A stretch of 64,000 bases of DNA, taken from contig CAJFCJ010000009.1 of the NCBI GenBank assembly GCA_904063045.1, positions 600,942-664,941 on the forward strand. The letters run 5' to 3'. The number at the start of each line of letters is the position of its first letter. Position 1 is the first letter of the stretch. Under the pieces are notes generated by a model. It did not search any database. It saw only the letters and a list, made by a program, of their open reading frames with translations, and was not told where the DNA came from. Positions 46,053 through 55,768 of the stretch are shown here, one piece after another. The DNA comes from Dimorphilus gyrociliatus. Taxonomy: Eukaryota; Animalia; Annelida. The translations under genes and the position numbers were made by a program.

Positions 46053-47359
46053 ATGGCTAGTGGCTGGGTAAGTAAAATACTTAGTTTTTAGTGTCCTAGA
46101 AAGACGTCATCATGTAATTCAGATAGTTATTGATTTTTAAATATTTTTCTCTTTATTTTAAATATTTTGAAGTTTTAGGAAATAGTAAATTTCTTATTTT
46201 TCGAACAAAGTTTACTCGATGATTAATTTTAGGGAACTGGTTCGGGATGGAGCAATCAGGCGCCTATGAATCAAGGTTTGTAGTAAATCACAATACTGAA
46301 TATTTAATAGATCTTGTAATTAATTGAATCTTTAGGCTATCAACAACAACAATACGCATCTGCACCTCCCGTTGGTGGAGGATACCAAAATCCAGGACAA
46401 TACCAGAATAATCCAGGACAATTTCAGAATAATCCGGGACAATTTCAGAATAATACGGGACAGTATCAGAACAACCAAGGTGAAATAATATATACATATT
46501 AGTCTTCATGTTGACAATTATATTTTTATTATATTATATATATATATTGAAAATAAACAGGTTATAATCAGTCGCATAATCAATATCCTGGTGGTCAAGG
46601 TAGAGAGATTAACAAACTATATTCTGGATTTAATTTCAATCATATTTTCAGGAGTCACCCAAAATATTAGAGAATGGTTTACGGCCATTGATCAATCTGG
46701 TAATGGAAGGGTGTCTGCCCTTGAATTACAGGCAGCATTAACAAATAGCGATTGGAGTCGATTCAGTATGGAAACATGTATATTAATGATAAGTTAGTGT
46801 TCTATTACAATGTAAATAATTCTTATAAAATATTTATATCTTTATTAAGTCATTAAATTATTGAATAAAACAAGAATAGTTTAGAAATAAGTTAATCTTG
46901 AAATTTCTATCATTTTAACAGAATTGTTTGATAGGAGTAATGATCAGAAAATTGATATAAATGAATTTCAAGCTTTATGGAATTATATTCAAGAATGGAA
47001 AAGAATATTTGAATCATTTGATAGAGATAGATCAGGTACAATTGATGTTAACGAATTGACTAGTGGTTAGTATGCTATATAAATAGAAAGGCTATAAACA
47101 TTTATAACCAATTTTATTAAACTTTATCACAGCGTTTAATCAAATGGGCTTTCGTCTAAGTCCCAACTTTTCCCAAGTCGTCGTAAAAAGGTACGATACG
47201 ACTGGCAGAGGCTGTATTACATTTGACGCTTTTATTCACGCTTGCGTTCTTGTCAAGAATTCCACCGATTCATTCGCAAAAAAAGATTTACAGAGAAAGG
47301 GAGAAGCAACTTTCAATTTTGAAGAATTCCTTACAATCTACTTGAATACAGTGAAATAA
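46053..47359 (+). CDS. PEF1: Penta-EF-hand protein (peflin/ALG-2 family, peflin-like long N-terminus), about 250 aa. Exons 46053-46067, 46233-46275, 46336-46479, 46561-46599, 46652-46792, 46922-47065, 47133-47359
   Basis: EF hands DQSGNGRVSALEL, DRSNDQKIDINEF, DRDRSGTIDVNEL and DTTGRGCITFDAF; LWNYIQEWKRIFESFD segment; G/Q/N/P/Y-rich N-terminus. The family is secure; peflin versus ALG-2 is less certain. Confidence 0.8.
46392..46475 (+). repeat. Four copies of a coding 21-bp unit (PGQ[Y/F]QNN) in the penta-EF-hand N-terminus
   Basis: ccaggacaataccagaataat / ccaggacaatttcagaataat / ccgggacaatttcagaataat / acgggacagtatcagaacaac. Confidence 0.85.
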
Positions 47360-48525: not shown

Positions 48526-50756
48526 ATGAGGGAGCAATTTCACGAACCGGCGTCGACGGCGTTCAGTAAAAAGTTGACGGCGGCGCAACAAGTTTGGTAA
48601 GTTCCGTGCCGTGAGGATTATCTGAGAACAGCCAATAAATAAGCTACATTTCGTAAATGTATTTTTTTCTCTTTATTAATCCCTTGTTGGTATTGTTGTC
48701 TATTGTTAATTAGCGCACGATTTATTGAACTGGCGTTTATGTTTGTTTGTTTGTCATTTTATATTTTGTTTTATAAAGAAATATATTAAAAATAATCACT
48801 CTAGACTTATCATTAAAAATTTGCATTTATGCTTGTTTTATTAGACAGGGGTACTTTTATATATGATGTGAGAAGGGGGGAAGGCTGGAAAGAGAGAGAG
48901 AGAGAGAGGAAAATGAAAGAAATCAGTAAGGGAAAAGAAATGATTAATAAAAAAAAATAATAGAACGAAAAGAATATGGGAGATAGATAATCAGATAGGA
49001 AGAAAAATGAAAATAAATGTTTAGTTTTCTCCTCTGTCAAAAGTCTTCTCCCTCTTCCTGTTCCTTCGCTTTTAGTACTTTCAATCCGCTAATTTGTATA
49101 CTTGATATTAGATAAAAATTGAGTGAATATTCATGAATGCTGGAAGGCGGATACCCAATGCATACGTAGAGTGATTATAGTCTTTTGTGCATAAGTATAT
49201 AATATAGCGAATCACATATCGTGACGAGAGCTTTTTCTTGCTTCTAGAGAAGTTTTTTTTGTTTTATTCTATAACAGGCTGTTAATGTAATTATTGGTGG
49301 AACGAAAAAGAATTAACATGACCGTGTCAAGCGTTCGTTCGTTTTACAAAAATAAAAAAAAAGAAGGAAAATAGATTAAAACCTATTGCGAACATATATA
49401 AAATTCTAGTTAACTCTTATAAATAATTATGCATTATTCATGACTTTCGTATCTTTTGCTGTTTTCGATTATATTTACGACGGTTAACTTCTATCGTTGA
49501 TCGATGAGAAAAGAGTATAAAAATCGGCATCTAAAAATGAAAAAGCGAGTAACGTCTTACGTCACCTCAGAGAGGAATAATTAAATTAAACTTTTCTGTT
49601 TCGTTTCTTTCATTTATTCACTTCGCCTTTATATTCAAAGTTGTATAGCGCAATTTTATGTGTTTTTATAAATTATATATACATATAATCTGAATGATTT
49701 ATGTTTTTACATTATAGCGTTGTATTATAAGATCTTTATTGATGAAAAGATATATTGTCTGTTTTGATATACAGTACTATTACAAATTGAGGATATAATA
49801 GTAAAATATATCTAAGAAACATATGTTTCTCATCTGTTGGCTTATTAGCGGTTCAAGTTTATATGCATAGTATAAAAGTGTTTACACAATATTAACAATC
49901 TTTCCTCTCTTTTTTTATTTCATTTATTCATTCATTCTTTCTTTCTTTCTATCTTTCATTTCAACCTTATTTGTGGCGGTTTGTGTCTGTCTGTCTGTAC
50001 ATATATTTATATAAAAAGTATACACTTTGTATATTCTTACATAACCAAAACGTTACTAATATAACAGAAAGAAGTCCTTAATTTTCGATTCTCGTCATGG
50101 CCTAATTCGTCGCTGTCCATTGCAAACAACATGAGTTCACTCATACATTATTCGTAAGTATATATCGTTGGTAAGAAGGAATGTTTATCATGCGTGAAAA
50201 TTATGAAAACGGAGAGGAAGTAGTAGAAGGCAAATGCCTTTTTTCCATTCAACTAACCATTCTCCTCTTTGCATCTTCTCTACTATTCAGTTATAGAAAG
50301 GAGAAAGTAAAAATAGATTAATGTAAACCTGCATATATTTATATAAACACTTATAAATTCTTTATTAGTCTTTACATATGAATTTTACGTAGAGCGCGCG
50401 CGATTTGGAAATGATGAATTAAGAGATTTCATGCAATTTATCCTCCTTCAATGAATAATTGATGCAGGCTGGTGCAAAGGCAAAACGTCTACTCGGGATC
50501 TCGATCTTCTGCCGATGCTACTTCCTCGTCAAAGATAGAAGAAACCCGCAGAAAACAAAGCGTTCATAACACCAAACAAACAACTTCAAAATCTGACAAA
50601 CAACTCAAAGCATACAGGTTTTTTTTCCCTTCTTTTCCCACATTTTTTATATTGTATATTCATAATAGTGCTTACTAACAAATAATAGGTCATAGTTACG
50701 ATAACAGCAATAATTGCAGTGATAATAAAGGCAATAAAGTAATACAAATAACAATA

Positions 50757-50787
<31 letters not shown>

Positions 50788-53700
50788 ATTCAGCATTGGC
50801 GTAACTGAGAAAAGAGCGTCTTTTACAAGGCAGATGGCGTGTTAGTAACGTTTCTTATATAATGAAATATAAACAATAAATTAGACATTATCCTACGATA
50901 AATTCTATTTATGACATATGTGCTATATATCATTTTGTTTATATAGCGAATATTTGCGTGTTTCGTGTATTTAAGGTTTATATCCGTGTTTGTATATAGG
51001 TGTCGTTAATAGTTACTTGTTTATTTTCTATCGTTAGCTAATTATGCTAAACCAAAATCTAAATTGATATTGGATCGAACAACTGCATTAGCTCTATGGG
51101 TATCTCAATTTCCTTAAAAAAGGCAAAGCAATAGACGCCCCTTTTTTAACACCACTAGAAATTACTTTTTGAACAAAAGTCGCGAGTTTATAGGCCTGCG
51201 AAATTCGAACAATCGATATAGTACTAGACGCCATCTAGGCTAATGTCAAGGCCATTAGGAGACGCCTTTTTAGAGTAGACGTTCTAAAGTGTATTGAAAA
51301 ATATAAAATGACCGCCAATCATAATTCGACAAATTCGTTAATTGGCGTTAAACCAGTCAATGCCGTTCAACTACGATCAGCTCTTCCGGCTAAGATAGTT
51401 AAGAAGAATTTTAGGTATGATAATAAAATGTAGATTACCCGTTTGATGTAGCGTATTGTAATCTATTTATTATTTTTAACATATTAGCCTGTGTATGTAG
51501 TATACAGTAAACGTACGTATACACTACTATACGCACATTTACAGTATTGCAGTATAACTGTTTGTAGCATGAATATATAACAGTCTATATATGCAAAAAA
51601 AAAGACTTTTTTCTATTAAAATATGTGTTCTTTATATATTTATATGGTATAGATAAATCTATATAAAAGCTATGTTTATAAAATATAATATGCTAAATGG
51701 ATAAAATATACTAAATATATCGAAATTGAAGAAAAGTTGGTATTCGCCAGGGGTCGTCAATGTCGCCATCAATACACTTAAAAGCCGAGTTTGTCAATTG
51801 CTATACTGTAAATTTGACCAACTGACGCCTTTTTCTATCGGATTATGAAGAATGATAACACCATAAAAATGTCTTGTATAAGAAACAGGTGGAATAGTCG
51901 ACGTCTATGAGCATAAATCTCTTTTAAATCGCTCTATATTAAGAAATACTTATTCTATTCATTTTAAACAGAAACCTTGGTAAATCGGGCTTGAGAGTAT
52001 CCAATATCGGTCTAGGTAAGTGCGTTTTTCTCCGTCTATATTCATTTAATTTACTAAGGGAATAAGATAAGTCTGTGTCAAGACGCTCGGGACTGATAAA
52101 CTAGTTAAAGATTGACTTTTTACTATTTCTTATAGGTACATGGGTAACTTTCGGAGCACAAATTCCAGATGAGGTGAGTATATAAACACTTAACCACTTG
52201 CAAAAACGAGATATTGTTACAAAAAACAGATTGCTGAAGAGATGCTTACTCTCGCCTACGAAAGCGGAATAAACGTAAGTATGATGAATCCAATTTTTTT
52301 TTTTTTTATAAAAACAAGTCACTCTTTATTAGCTATATATTTATATATATATAATGTATATATATTAATATACACGATGTACTGCTTATATCTAGTGTAT
52401 CTCTATAAGTGCTTAAATTAGCATCCCATACAAAAGTCTTAGGCCTACGAATGTAAAAATATTAGATATAGACCTATATGTGAATAAAAGAAAAAAAAAG
52501 CTACTGCAATTTTATTAAATAGTCTGAAAAACTTCTAGGTATTCGACACGGCAGAAGTTTACGCGGCTGGAAAGTAAGTGAATAGAAAAAAAAATATTCC
52601 TTATCCGTTCCGATTCCTTAATTACATAGACGCCGAATTTAGGGCAGAAATTGTTCTTGGAAAATTACTTAAGAAGAAAGGATGGAGGCGATCCAGCTAT
52701 ATCGTGACTACAAAGATATACTGGGGTGGGAAGTAAGTATATACATACCTTTAAAGCCATTTAAAGGATGAAATAATTTTAGTTATTTAGTCTTTTCCCT
52801 TCCCTCTCTCCCTCTTTCTGTAGAACCCTTTTAACAGGACCTTTAATCTATCTATCTATTAATATAAATTGTGTATGCTTTGTACATATGTATTAGCAAT
52901 GCTTGTTTCTAAATAAATTATTGTGTAGATACGCTTATTCGTATAGTCTGTATAGATGGTAGAGTATGTACAATAGATGTTATAACGAATATAAATGCGT
53001 AATCCTCCTAGAGCCGAGACGGAAAAAGGATTATCTCGCAAGCATATTATTGAAGGCTTAAAAGCCTCTTTAGGTGAGTTGCATACTTAATATCATCTTA
53101 TAGTTAAATGTTGATAAGTATACAATCTTATTGTATATAATTGCGTATTGTTATTAATAGAAATGTGATATATATATATATATATGTACTAATATATCAG
53201 AAATGTATACTTTTTCTGCTTATTTTAATCTTTTAAAATAAAATATCATTGCAGAGAGACTGCAGTTGGAATATGTCGATATTGTGTTCGCTAATAAACC
53301 AGATCCACATACACCTATGGAGGGTTTGTTTTAAAAATAAAAACAAACCTCTATCAGAAAGAAAACAACAATTTATTCTCTTTCTCTTTACAGAAATCGT
53401 CCGAGCATTCAGTTATATAATCGATAAAGGATGGGCAATGTATTGGGGCACGTCTAGATGGTCTACTATGGAGATAATGGTGAGTTCTTGACTTCAATCA
53501 ATTTGTACTTAGGGGAATGACTTTGTGCGATATATAGATCTGTATACACTGCTACAGTGTTTTATACGCTCTTACATCGACATATGTCACCTTAGTGTTG
53601 ATTTAATATTATAATATAGATGTCGCTAACTAGAATATTTTTCTTCCCCTTAGGAAGCGTATTCTGTAGCCCGACAATTTAATTTAATACCCCCGATAGC

Positions 53701-54271
53701 CGAACAAGCAGAATATCACATCTTTCAAAGGGAAAAGGTAGAGCTGCATATGCCCGAATTGTATCACAAAATTGGTTTGGGAGCAATGACTTGGTCGCCA
53801 TTGGCGTGTGGTTTTTTGACCGGAAAATACGAGGATGGCGTACCAGTTTATTCGAGAGCTTCTCAGAAGGGATACACTTGGCTGAAAGATAGAATACTAA
53901 GTGAAGAGGGAAGAAAACAGCAGGCCAAGCTAAGAGAAGTTCAAACAATTGCTGAAAAAATAGGTTGTAGCGCCGCACAATTAGCCATAGGTTCGTGGAA
54001 AAAGAACAATAGATTATAGAAAAAGCATAACAATACGCCATATAAGTGTTTTTTAATTTTTATTATTTCTTTTTAAATTGTAGCATGGTGCCTAAAGAAT
54101 GAGAATGTGCACTGCGTTCTTGTAGGAGCGTCTACAGTTGAGCAATTACATGAGAATTTGCAAGCGGTGCAATTTGTTCCCAAATTAACACCAGCTTTAA
54201 TGAATGAAATTGATAAGATTCTGGGAAACAAACCTACTCGAATTAGAGAGATACAACAGCCGCAAAGGTGA
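48526..54271 (+). CDS. KCNAB: Voltage-gated K+ channel beta subunit (Kv-beta/Hyperkinetic, aldo-keto reductase fold). Core exons 51972-52015, 52136-52173, 52230-52274, 52539-52573, 52643-52732, 53012-53073, 53255-53323, 53394-53479, 53654-53990, 54084-54271. Candidate first exons 48526-48596 or 50131-50153 (both via 50468-50617), or 51308-51414
   Basis: [87 protein letters not shown]. The core is near-unambiguous; the first exons are inferred from ATG context, donor consensus and phase-2 compatibility. Confidence 0.93.
50761..50786. repeat. (AAT)n microsatellite in a Kv-beta intron
   Basis: Direct reading. Confidence 0.9.
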
Positions 54272-55283
54272 CTAGAAGCCGGCCAGGCGACTTCTGGCCG
54301 ATCCTCTTCGCCACGTTCTCGCCCTCCTCCAGCTGCCATGGGAAATGCTGCTATGACAACACCCTGTAGTGTAATGTAAATAAGAGAATAAGCTATATCT
54401 TTAAACTAGGTTTCATCTTGCATTAGTTATACAGAAAAATATTAGTAAACTAATAACTACTCAATTTTCGTTATTCTAATTATATATGTACCGTCTTATA
54501 TAACATTATAGGTTGTGCTGTATCTAGGTCGTCTACTGAACGAGAGAAAGATGATATTTTTTGTCTCCAATAGGGAATTTTTTCCCTCCTTAAAGGTAAA
54601 GTAAATAACGAAATAGAGAAAATATACGTTAAACTTATACAACCTAAGCATAAATAATATACTTTATACCTAATTTAAATAAACTCAAAATGCAGAAAAA
54701 AGAAAAGAATCATATTTCATTGTCTTTTCCAGATAGAAGAAATCTAATTAATACTGTAATTAGTTGATTTAGAAATGAAATACTCTAATTATATAATTTC
54801 TATATAACTTAAGCAATGAAATACAAAATACTTTTTGCGCTAATCTTGTAAATACAATACCTAATCTAGTCGATAGTAGAGGAAAAATACATTAATAAAT
54901 GATAAGTAGTAAGTGTATACTTTAGTCTTTCTACTGCATATAGTGAATCTAAAATGTGCTTTAATTCTTAATTTTTAACGGGAAGAAAAGAAATTAAAGA
55001 AAAAAAGAGAGAGAGAATGAATGATAGAAGGTGAGAGTAAGTGGATGAGAAAATAAGAGATCTTATGCTCTTTCTTTAGGGATAAGCGAATCTGTGTATA
55101 CAACATTCTAATTATACTAATTTTACTTCATTTACTCGAAAACTTAATCAAGATAAATAGTTTGCTGCTAAGTAAGGAAGCAAGTTTTTTCAATGTATTC
55201 TACAAGAATAATATAATTGTCAATAGATGGCGCTATTTGTAATAATAAAAATTGTATATTCAATGCTTCAAGTAATAATACTA

Positions 55284-55286
<3 letters not shown>

Positions 55287-55332
<46 letters not shown>
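55287..55332. repeat. (AT)n microsatellite downstream of Kv-beta
   Basis: Direct reading; other (AT)n tracts lie near 22070, 41425, 59010 and 59467. Confidence 0.95.
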
Positions 55333-55333
<1 letters not shown>

Positions 55334-55768
55334 CTTTTATGTTATACGTATGTCTATATCATATTGAAAAAATACATCTATATAGATATATGAATATGTA
55401 TAATTAATGCATATTTTTGAACAGGTAAAGACGTTATTGAAATGCCAAAAATGTATATAAAACATATATATTTAATTGATATTATTTGTTTAATATGATT
55501 TTTTTTAATTGTTTTCGTTCCATTTGCCTAGCTCGATTATTATTAAACTTAATAAAGACAAAGTCAAATTAAGCGCAAGACTTGGGAATGTATTGAATCT
55601 TCTCTGATAATAACAAAGCATTATACACCAACCTTTAGTATTTTCTTGTATTTTATGAATAATAAACACTTTATTATATTTTTAAATATTAATATTAAGT
55701 TAAACGATTCATTTGTTAATATGAATTAGTTTTAGTTCTTCTTCCTCTTCTTCTTCGATAAACTGCTG

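Follow-up and report, generated by a model that had tools for sequence, protein, structure and literature searches.

A probable readthrough extension of Kv-beta in a dinophilid annelid that ends in a recurring CaaX box

Does the stop codon of the Kv-beta gene of the annelid Dimorphilus gyrociliatus simply end the protein, or does it admit a minority of ribosomes to a downstream membrane anchor? The question arises in a 64,000-nucleotide (nt) stretch of contig CAJFCJ010000009.1 (the window, whose first letter is position 1), which carries a Kv-beta/Hyperkinetic-type aldo-keto reductase gene of 12 coding exons, annotated as DgyrCDS7315, with a product of 388 amino acids (aa). The stop of this gene stands in the context TGA-CTAG and is followed by an open frame that closes with the residues CSVM. 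Kv-beta controls the inactivation and trafficking of Shaker/Kv1 channels and, in flies, couples redox state to sleep need. We consider it likely that this UGA is a programmed leaky stop, yielding a minority Kv-beta isoform with a CSVM tail that is farnesylated and membrane-tethered; for the worm, we infer both readthrough and prenylation from comparison of sequences.

The elements at issue are the following, with RNAfold as the source of the hairpin:

50131..54271, plus strand: Kv-beta gene DgyrCDS7315, stop included, from the spliced mapping of proteins P0248 and P0367 onto the window
54084..54268, plus strand: last coding exon, ending QPQR (last codons CAA AGG)
54267..54312, plus strand: predicted hairpin
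54269..54275, plus strand: stop context TGA-CTAG (TGA 54269-54271, CTAG 54272-54275), preceded by CAA AGG
54272..54376, plus strand: 35-codon in-frame readthrough extension, LEAGQATSGRSSSPRSRPPPAAMGNAAMTTPCSVM
54365..54376, plus strand: CaaX box CSVM (TGT AGT GTA ATG), the end of the extension
54377..54379, plus strand: second stop TAA, kept in all lineages
54380..55119, plus strand: AT-rich distal 3' untranslated region (3'UTR; GC 0.26), transcribed without a splice in the contig from run X6

A first-pass annotation of this DNA had pointed to the stop context, a stem, the 35-codon open reading frame (ORF), CSVM and the TAA, and each was recovered to the nucleotide. Its description of a GC-rich extension that gives way to AT-rich DNA also holds, with a GC content of 0.58 in the extension, 0.42 in the coding sequence (CDS) and 0.26 in the 3'UTR. 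The GC content at third codon positions (GC3) is 0.37 in the extension versus 0.38 in the CDS and, because the two are equal, the excess GC of the extension sits in codon positions 1 and 2, a coding-type periodicity. At the local 3'UTR composition, CTAG is expected by chance after ~0.2% of stops. The TGA-CTAG is the same in every diverged dinophilid lineage compared (X2, A and B), and it overlaps a 5' splice-site-like AG/GTGACT.

The stem, CGGCCAG (54280-54286) paired with CTGGCCG (54294-54300), begins 8 nt past the stop. RNAfold adds a G.U pair to it, giving an 8-bp GC-rich stem (54280-54287/54293-54300) with a 5-nt loop, plus a 3-bp helix, and the basal helix of the predicted hairpin pairs the stop codon itself, GGUGA (54267-71) with UCGCC (54308-12). 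The hairpin is invariant in three lineages, and the sole lineage-B substitution inside it, 54304 C>G, affects an internal loop at an unpaired position. No long-range partner for the pyrimidine-rich stretch of 54269-54382 emerged from a search for repeats. Farther into the 3'UTR, the reference and lineages A and B share an identical motif, TAGGTTTCATCTTGCATTAGT (54407-54430), amid flanking UTR that is diverged or unalignable; the motif may be regulatory.

The stop and the extension are present in mature transcripts. An X6 contig of 1844 nt, identical to the window, has the intron 53991-54083 removed and then runs unbroken over 54081-55119. Contigs from the metatranscriptomes X1 and X2 also span the stop and extension, as do those of a diverged relative (X4, X5, X14 and X17); in total, seven RNA-derived contigs from three lineages cover 54268-54382 unspliced with the stop kept, and the intron is removed in RNA contigs from five runs. 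All seven RNA contigs read TGA, and none has A>G at 54271. The annotation had named splicing at AG/GTGACT and polyadenylation before 54379 as outcomes that would speak against its proposal. Among the contigs of seven runs, no splice joint occurs at the AG/GT overlapping the stop, and none of the contigs aligned to the locus ends before 54379. Runs X1-X5, X14 and X17, which comprise coral and marine metatranscriptomes as well as data labelled with the names of at least four other organisms, contain transcripts of the worm or of close cryptic relatives, suggesting that dinophilid worms are often carried along in marine cultures and samples.

Comparison within Dinophilidae resolves how the extension evolves. 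In lineage A, the penultimate exon carries 24 differences from the window in 335 nt and the last exon carries 18; over the 129 nt of 54254-54382 there is one difference, the synonymous 54337 C>T (GCC>GCT), to which one lineage-A run adds 54350 G>T, a conservative Ala>Ser. Lineages A, B and X2 all have their first indel at 54383, 4 nt past the TAA. Lineage B, represented by the genomic Logan contigs L006 and L007, was reached via the ORF fragment P0369, which clusters with the protein of the worm itself, and the differences of this lineage from the window are distributed as follows:

Penultimate exon: 7, 0 and 42 differences at codon positions 1, 2 and 3, of 112 each
Last exon: 6, 1 and 24 differences at codon positions 1, 2 and 3, of 61 each
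Extension: 0, 0 and 4 differences at codon positions 1, 2 and 3, of 35 each
Intron: 36% differ, plus 7 gapped positions
3'UTR, 54380-54450: 24% differ

Third codon positions of the neighbouring exons thus differ at 38% (66/173). All four extension changes, 54304 TCC>TCG, 54325 CCT>CCC, 54337 GCC>GCT and 54358 ACA>ACG, are synonymous, and the chance of four changes all falling at position 3 is 0.012; in the other open frame, two of the four alter residues (H>Y and N>D). The extension is conserved beyond both the intron (p = 7e-9) and the following UTR (p = 7e-5), and its peptide is identical at 35/35 positions, CaaX box included, non-conservation being a further outcome that the annotation had set against itself. 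At the level of these alignments, frame-specific purifying selection on the extension is shown within Dinophilidae.

More distant 3' ends were obtained by scanning metagenome contigs for matches to the worm protein, combined with exact look-ups of Logan and NCBI proteins; the scaffold of the protein-relative search was a Macrostomum Kv-beta joined to the window exons. An arginine codon followed by TGA-C(TA), an in-frame ORF (37-55 codons) and a terminal CaaX recur in four further distant lineages, listed here beneath the worm:

Window, D. gyrociliatus: QPQR, AGG TGA CTAG, 35 codons, CSVM
L011, Joint Genome Institute (JGI) metatranscriptome, annelid-like: QMSR, AGG TGA CTAG, 53 codons, CSLQ
L090, polyadenylated mRNA from ERR6338309, sister of L011: QVTR, AGG TGA CTAG, 55 codons with the polybasic stretch KPKPKRRRP, CCMQ
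L091, mRNA from SRR7235720, bivalve: GINR, AGG TGA CTA, 37 codons, CTVQ
L092, genome of the ostracod Cyprideis torosa: LQLQR, AGA TGA C, 38 codons, CIIL

The bivalve sequence (L091/P0270) is placed beside Dreissena in the protein tree (98/95). The stop of Cyprideis, the only arthropod whose extension end was read here, lies at a place equivalent to that of the worm (LQLQR-TGA-C). All five boxes carry Cys at -4, an aliphatic residue at -2 and a last residue of the farnesyltransferase (FTase; M/S/Q/A) or geranylgeranyltransferase type I (GGTase-I; L) type. Even if the chance of Cys at -4 is set generously at 3.5%, 5 or more of 9 ORFs would end in Cxxx with a probability of ~6e-6. Across lineages the linkers are unalignable, whereas the leaky stop, the frame and the CaaX are retained, as would be expected of a lipidation box on a flexible tether. 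For each of the five lineages, the predicted fold pairs the stop region (GGUGAC, in the ostracod GAUGAC) with complementary sequence farther downstream, such as GUCAC, with no fold beating its shuffles. A back-translated query made from the C-terminal half of the extension returned no matches in the metagenome scan. It is the comparative evidence, not the stem or the ORF alone, that lifts support above chance, and the annotation's proposal of programmed UGA-CUAG readthrough with a CaaX ending is upheld in its core by the stop in mature RNA, the synonymous-only changes, the kept second stop and the recurrence in four lineages.

Kv-beta C-termini in general are highly varied across spiralians (P0249-P0363), many of them closing with Arg then stop. 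Nemertean tails contain Cys (KVCRCYQACMSQS and FFQCISTSQS), several gastropods end in NSC or NSIC, and the oyster protein continues FNR-SSRRSISTQPKT, with TCA at the position of the annelid TGA. At 1470-1643 of L011, an in-frame duplicated segment of ~69 nt (YISRITSKVEAEIEAILNSPAE, then TAG) directly precedes its homologous counterpart YISKLTPNVVAEIERIVGNRP. The duplicated segment resembles an alternative or duplicated exon that has been retained, and it would truncate the protein in this isoform.

To our knowledge, readthrough of fly Hk has been catalogued ever since comparative genomics found abundant readthrough, with no function attached to the extension. The Drosophila melanogaster entry, Hk-RD (FBgn0263220), extends by 49 codons past TGA-C, and Anopheles gambiae AGAP010067-RA extends by 45 codons past TGA-C and is flagged 'RNA Structure' (Jungreis 2016 supplement, PMC5100048). 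The two genes form an orthologous 'Ancient' readthrough pair (PMC5100048), and the Hk stem-loop behind a test stop raises readthrough in S2 reporters to 4-5x that of the dfr reference construct dfr288 (Kansara 2026, PMC13170385). Because this pair was already catalogued, the annelid case is an orthologous member of a known event. The first-pass annotation, which knew of nothing described for Kv-beta, was therefore mistaken as to readthrough and apparently correct as to the lipidation box, since CaaX or prenylation of Hk or Kv-beta is not mentioned in Jungreis 2016, Pancsa 2016, Kansara 2026 or the literature searched. Both the reach of the event to annelids and molluscs and the recurrence of a CaaX at the end appear to be new. 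Precedents exist: CSVM is the farnesylated C-terminus of human Rheb (PMC7255682), readthrough extensions with a predicted prenylation signal are described for one Drosophila gene, Syx17 (Dunn 2013), and one Arabidopsis gene, MT1C (bioRxiv 2021.11.09.467898), and mammalian UGA-CUA(G) readthrough appends a targeting signal, the type 1 peroxisomal signal (PTS1) of LDHB and MDH1 (PMC4359377, PMC4132726).

Several observations weigh against a programmed readthrough that serves the CaaX box. The annotation had counted four coinciding features as independent; all four are present, but their independence is incomplete because a GC-rich stretch has few stops, and another plus-strand frame is also open, to 54367. 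The fold energy of the hairpin is no better than that of dinucleotide shuffles (z = 0.67 and 0.03). The RNA evidence consists of assembled contigs, from which minor isoforms can be dropped. Synonymous changes relative to lineage B are ~3x fewer in the extension (4/35) than in the CDS (66/173; p = 0.002), so a constraint at the RNA level also acts and could explain part of the conservation; the hairpin at 54267-54312 is the obvious candidate for it. Finally, the layout is absent from four of the relatives retrieved:

L003: TGA AGT, 45 codons, no CaaX
L010: TAA
L001, Rotaria (rotifer-type): TAA
L002, rotifer-type: TGA TTG, with a hydrophobic ORF after it

An unlikely alternative makes 54269-54382 a non-coding element of the 3'UTR, serving for instance to bind proteins or to localise the mRNA, with the ORF and CaaX incidental. 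Its synonymous sites being ~3x more conserved than those of the CDS, the single lineage-A change in the block versus 18 in the last exon, the natural scarcity of stops in GC-rich sequence and the presence of another short conserved motif downstream (~54407-54430) would all fit such an element. However, the four substitutions are synonymous exactly in the readthrough frame and two of them are non-synonymous in the other open frame, the extension GC3 matches the coding GC3, and conservation stops at the in-frame stop; nor can the element explain why frame and CaaX are kept in the unalignable extensions of four distant lineages. A purely nucleotide-level element, suggested by lineage A alone, is contradicted by the synonymous-only changes of lineage B. 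A short downstream ORF, MGNAAMTTPCSVM (ATG 54338, in GCCATGG), was rejected since it leaves the upstream synonymous-only changes at 54304, 54325 and 54337 unexplained. It is quite improbable that the same extension is translated after A-to-I editing of the stop (UGA to UGG, Trp). The stop codon lies in a helix in the predicted folds of all five CaaX lineages, with the A of UGA paired to U, and both the extra synonymous constraint, typical of editing-site duplexes, and the parallel with hepatitis delta virus speak for editing; yet none of the seven RNA contigs has G at 54271, ADAR least favours a G as 5' neighbour, interruptions break up an already short helix, and UGA-CUAG and UGA-C are established readthrough contexts, the insect orthologues being classed as readthrough.

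The overlapping AG/GTGACT raises the very unlikely case of a working donor at 54267/54268, with the block split into a small alternative intron and an alternative terminal exon. The best mini-intron, 54268-54332, would end at the acceptor ctcctccAG (54332) and give QQPQ-SCHGKCCYDNTL followed by a stop (that is, QSCHGKCCYDNTL and a stop). Its 65 nt lie within the range of the gene's small introns, and a pyrimidine tract plus AG occupies 54316-54332. Many spiralian Kv-beta proteins end in Arg followed by a stop, as a phase-2 donor AG/GTRA would read, and Octopus has one isoform that stops at PPR and a second that goes on as PPRVINN; the stop may sit on an old, optional splice donor. Against this, the joint is missing from the contigs of seven runs and unused by the annotated isoforms, no downstream AG restores the readthrough frame, two substitutions in the coding stretch of the alternative frame are non-synonymous there, and L011, L090 and L091 are spliced mRNAs yet carry the in-frame TGA. 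That UGA encodes selenocysteine has a very small probability: an open frame does follow the UGA, but a search of 53600-55400, which covers the whole 3'UTR, returned no selenocysteine insertion sequence (SECIS) or other Rfam family at E <= 1, and Kv-beta does not belong to the known selenoprotein families. Frameshifting at the stop, whether -1 or +1, was rejected, as the +1 frame runs straight into TAG and the sequence has no slippery heptamer.

Under leaky termination with a CaaX tail, most ribosomes would terminate at the UGA at 54269 and yield the ordinary soluble Kv-beta of 388 aa, and a fraction would decode UGA-CUAG with a near-cognate tRNA, probably aided by the hairpin 8 nt downstream. 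Readthrough would add 36 residues, namely one at the stop and a 35-aa Ser/Pro/Arg/Ala-rich, presumably disordered linker ending in CSVM. As a farnesyltransferase-type CaaX, CSVM would direct farnesylation, trimming and methylation of the extended subunit, and the lipidated subunit, together with any tetramer containing one, would be tethered at the inner leaflet under the Kv1/Shaker channel. Judged by the architecture of Kv1.2-beta2, an extended tether of 35-55 residues could reach the membrane from the beta tetramer under the T1 domain.

On balance, we lean towards a broader reading, in which Kv-beta/Hk readthrough is a protostome-wide switch found in arthropods, annelids and molluscs whose conserved purpose is the CaaX, a regulated fraction of this redox sensor and otherwise soluble subunit being farnesylated or geranylgeranylated and anchored to the membrane. 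If true, this would be the first deeply conserved readthrough-dependent lipidation, and it would give the 'ancient' fly Hk readthrough a function. The comparison shows the event to be much older and wider than insects. The terminal CaaX is the one feature that recurs besides the leaky stop and the frame, and its recurrence points to a concrete function open to test: a Kv-beta isoform with a lipid anchor, produced in amounts that the efficiency of termination would set. Such a membrane-tethered pool could alter the place and mode of Kv-beta action. The locus would also offer a clean natural example, from neither a vertebrate nor a fly, in which to study readthrough at UGA-CUAG with a stem-loop.

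P0248 and P0367 were both rebuilt exactly by spliced mapping on the window, and P0248 (DgyrCDS7315 of Dimorphilus gyrociliatus; Pfam PF00248) is 100% identical to the window exons. The small introns of the gene measure 56-93 nt. In the protein tree of metazoan Kv-betas, the worm gene falls among the spiralian sequences, weakly grouped with L003/P0252, L010, L011 and L090/P0288 (support 89/53). Differences among the five annotated isoforms concern the N-terminus or a retained intron, with an alternative C-terminus in 0/5, and one further coding exon belongs to the set:

51308-51414, plus strand: alternative first coding exon, DgyrCDS7317

Two alternative N-terminal coding starts (50131-50617 in DgyrCDS7315 and 51308-51414 in DgyrCDS7317) are thus joined to a common core at 51972, reminiscent of the vertebrate Kv-beta1 isoforms. 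Intron-retention products, DgyrCDS7316 and DgyrCDS7318, are annotated for the last intron (53991-54083), and the Logan ORF fragment P0369, which gave access to lineage B, is of the same kind. The upstream neighbour, known from the ORF list only, is an EF-hand (penta-EF-hand/sorcin-like) gene of several short exons at 46591-47359 on the plus strand.

Among known systems, the insect pair Hk-RD/AGAP010067 is the closest, sharing the Kv-beta family, UGA-C, a second ORF of similar size (49/45 versus 35 codons) and an RNA structure just downstream, predicted in the case of the worm; the worm differs in being an annelid with the full UGA-CUAG, and the text of the insect papers is without CaaX or prenylation. 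LDHB, MDH1, AQP4, OPRK1, OPRL1 and MAPK10 have the same stop context as the worm and, as in mammalian UGA-CUA(G) readthrough, a minor extended isoform would gain a short C-terminal sorting signal. The predicted worm signal is a lipidation box, whereas that of the mammals is a peroxisomal tripeptide, and conservation here spans protostome phyla. Syx17 and MT1C resemble the worm in having readthrough extensions that end in a predicted farnesyl or prenyl motif, but these are single-species predictions with no evidence for conservation of the motif, whereas the Kv-beta CaaX recurs in five lineages. In hepatitis delta virus, ADAR amber/W editing of UAG adds to the large antigen a 19-aa tail with a CXXQ farnesylation box. 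There, too, stop recoding adds a prenylation-box tail, and three Kv-beta extensions likewise end in CxxQ; the viral case is ADAR editing of UAG, whereas the worm gene is cellular and its RNA contigs carry no sign of editing. Rheb has the identical CSVM, a disordered linker precedes the box as in Ras-type CaaX proteins, and the polybasic KPKPKRRRP before CCMQ in L090 recalls K-Ras. Unlike the boxes of Rheb and Ras, that of Kv-beta would be reached only via stop recoding, and its carrier is a channel subunit that belongs to the aldo-keto reductases, whereas theirs are GTPases.

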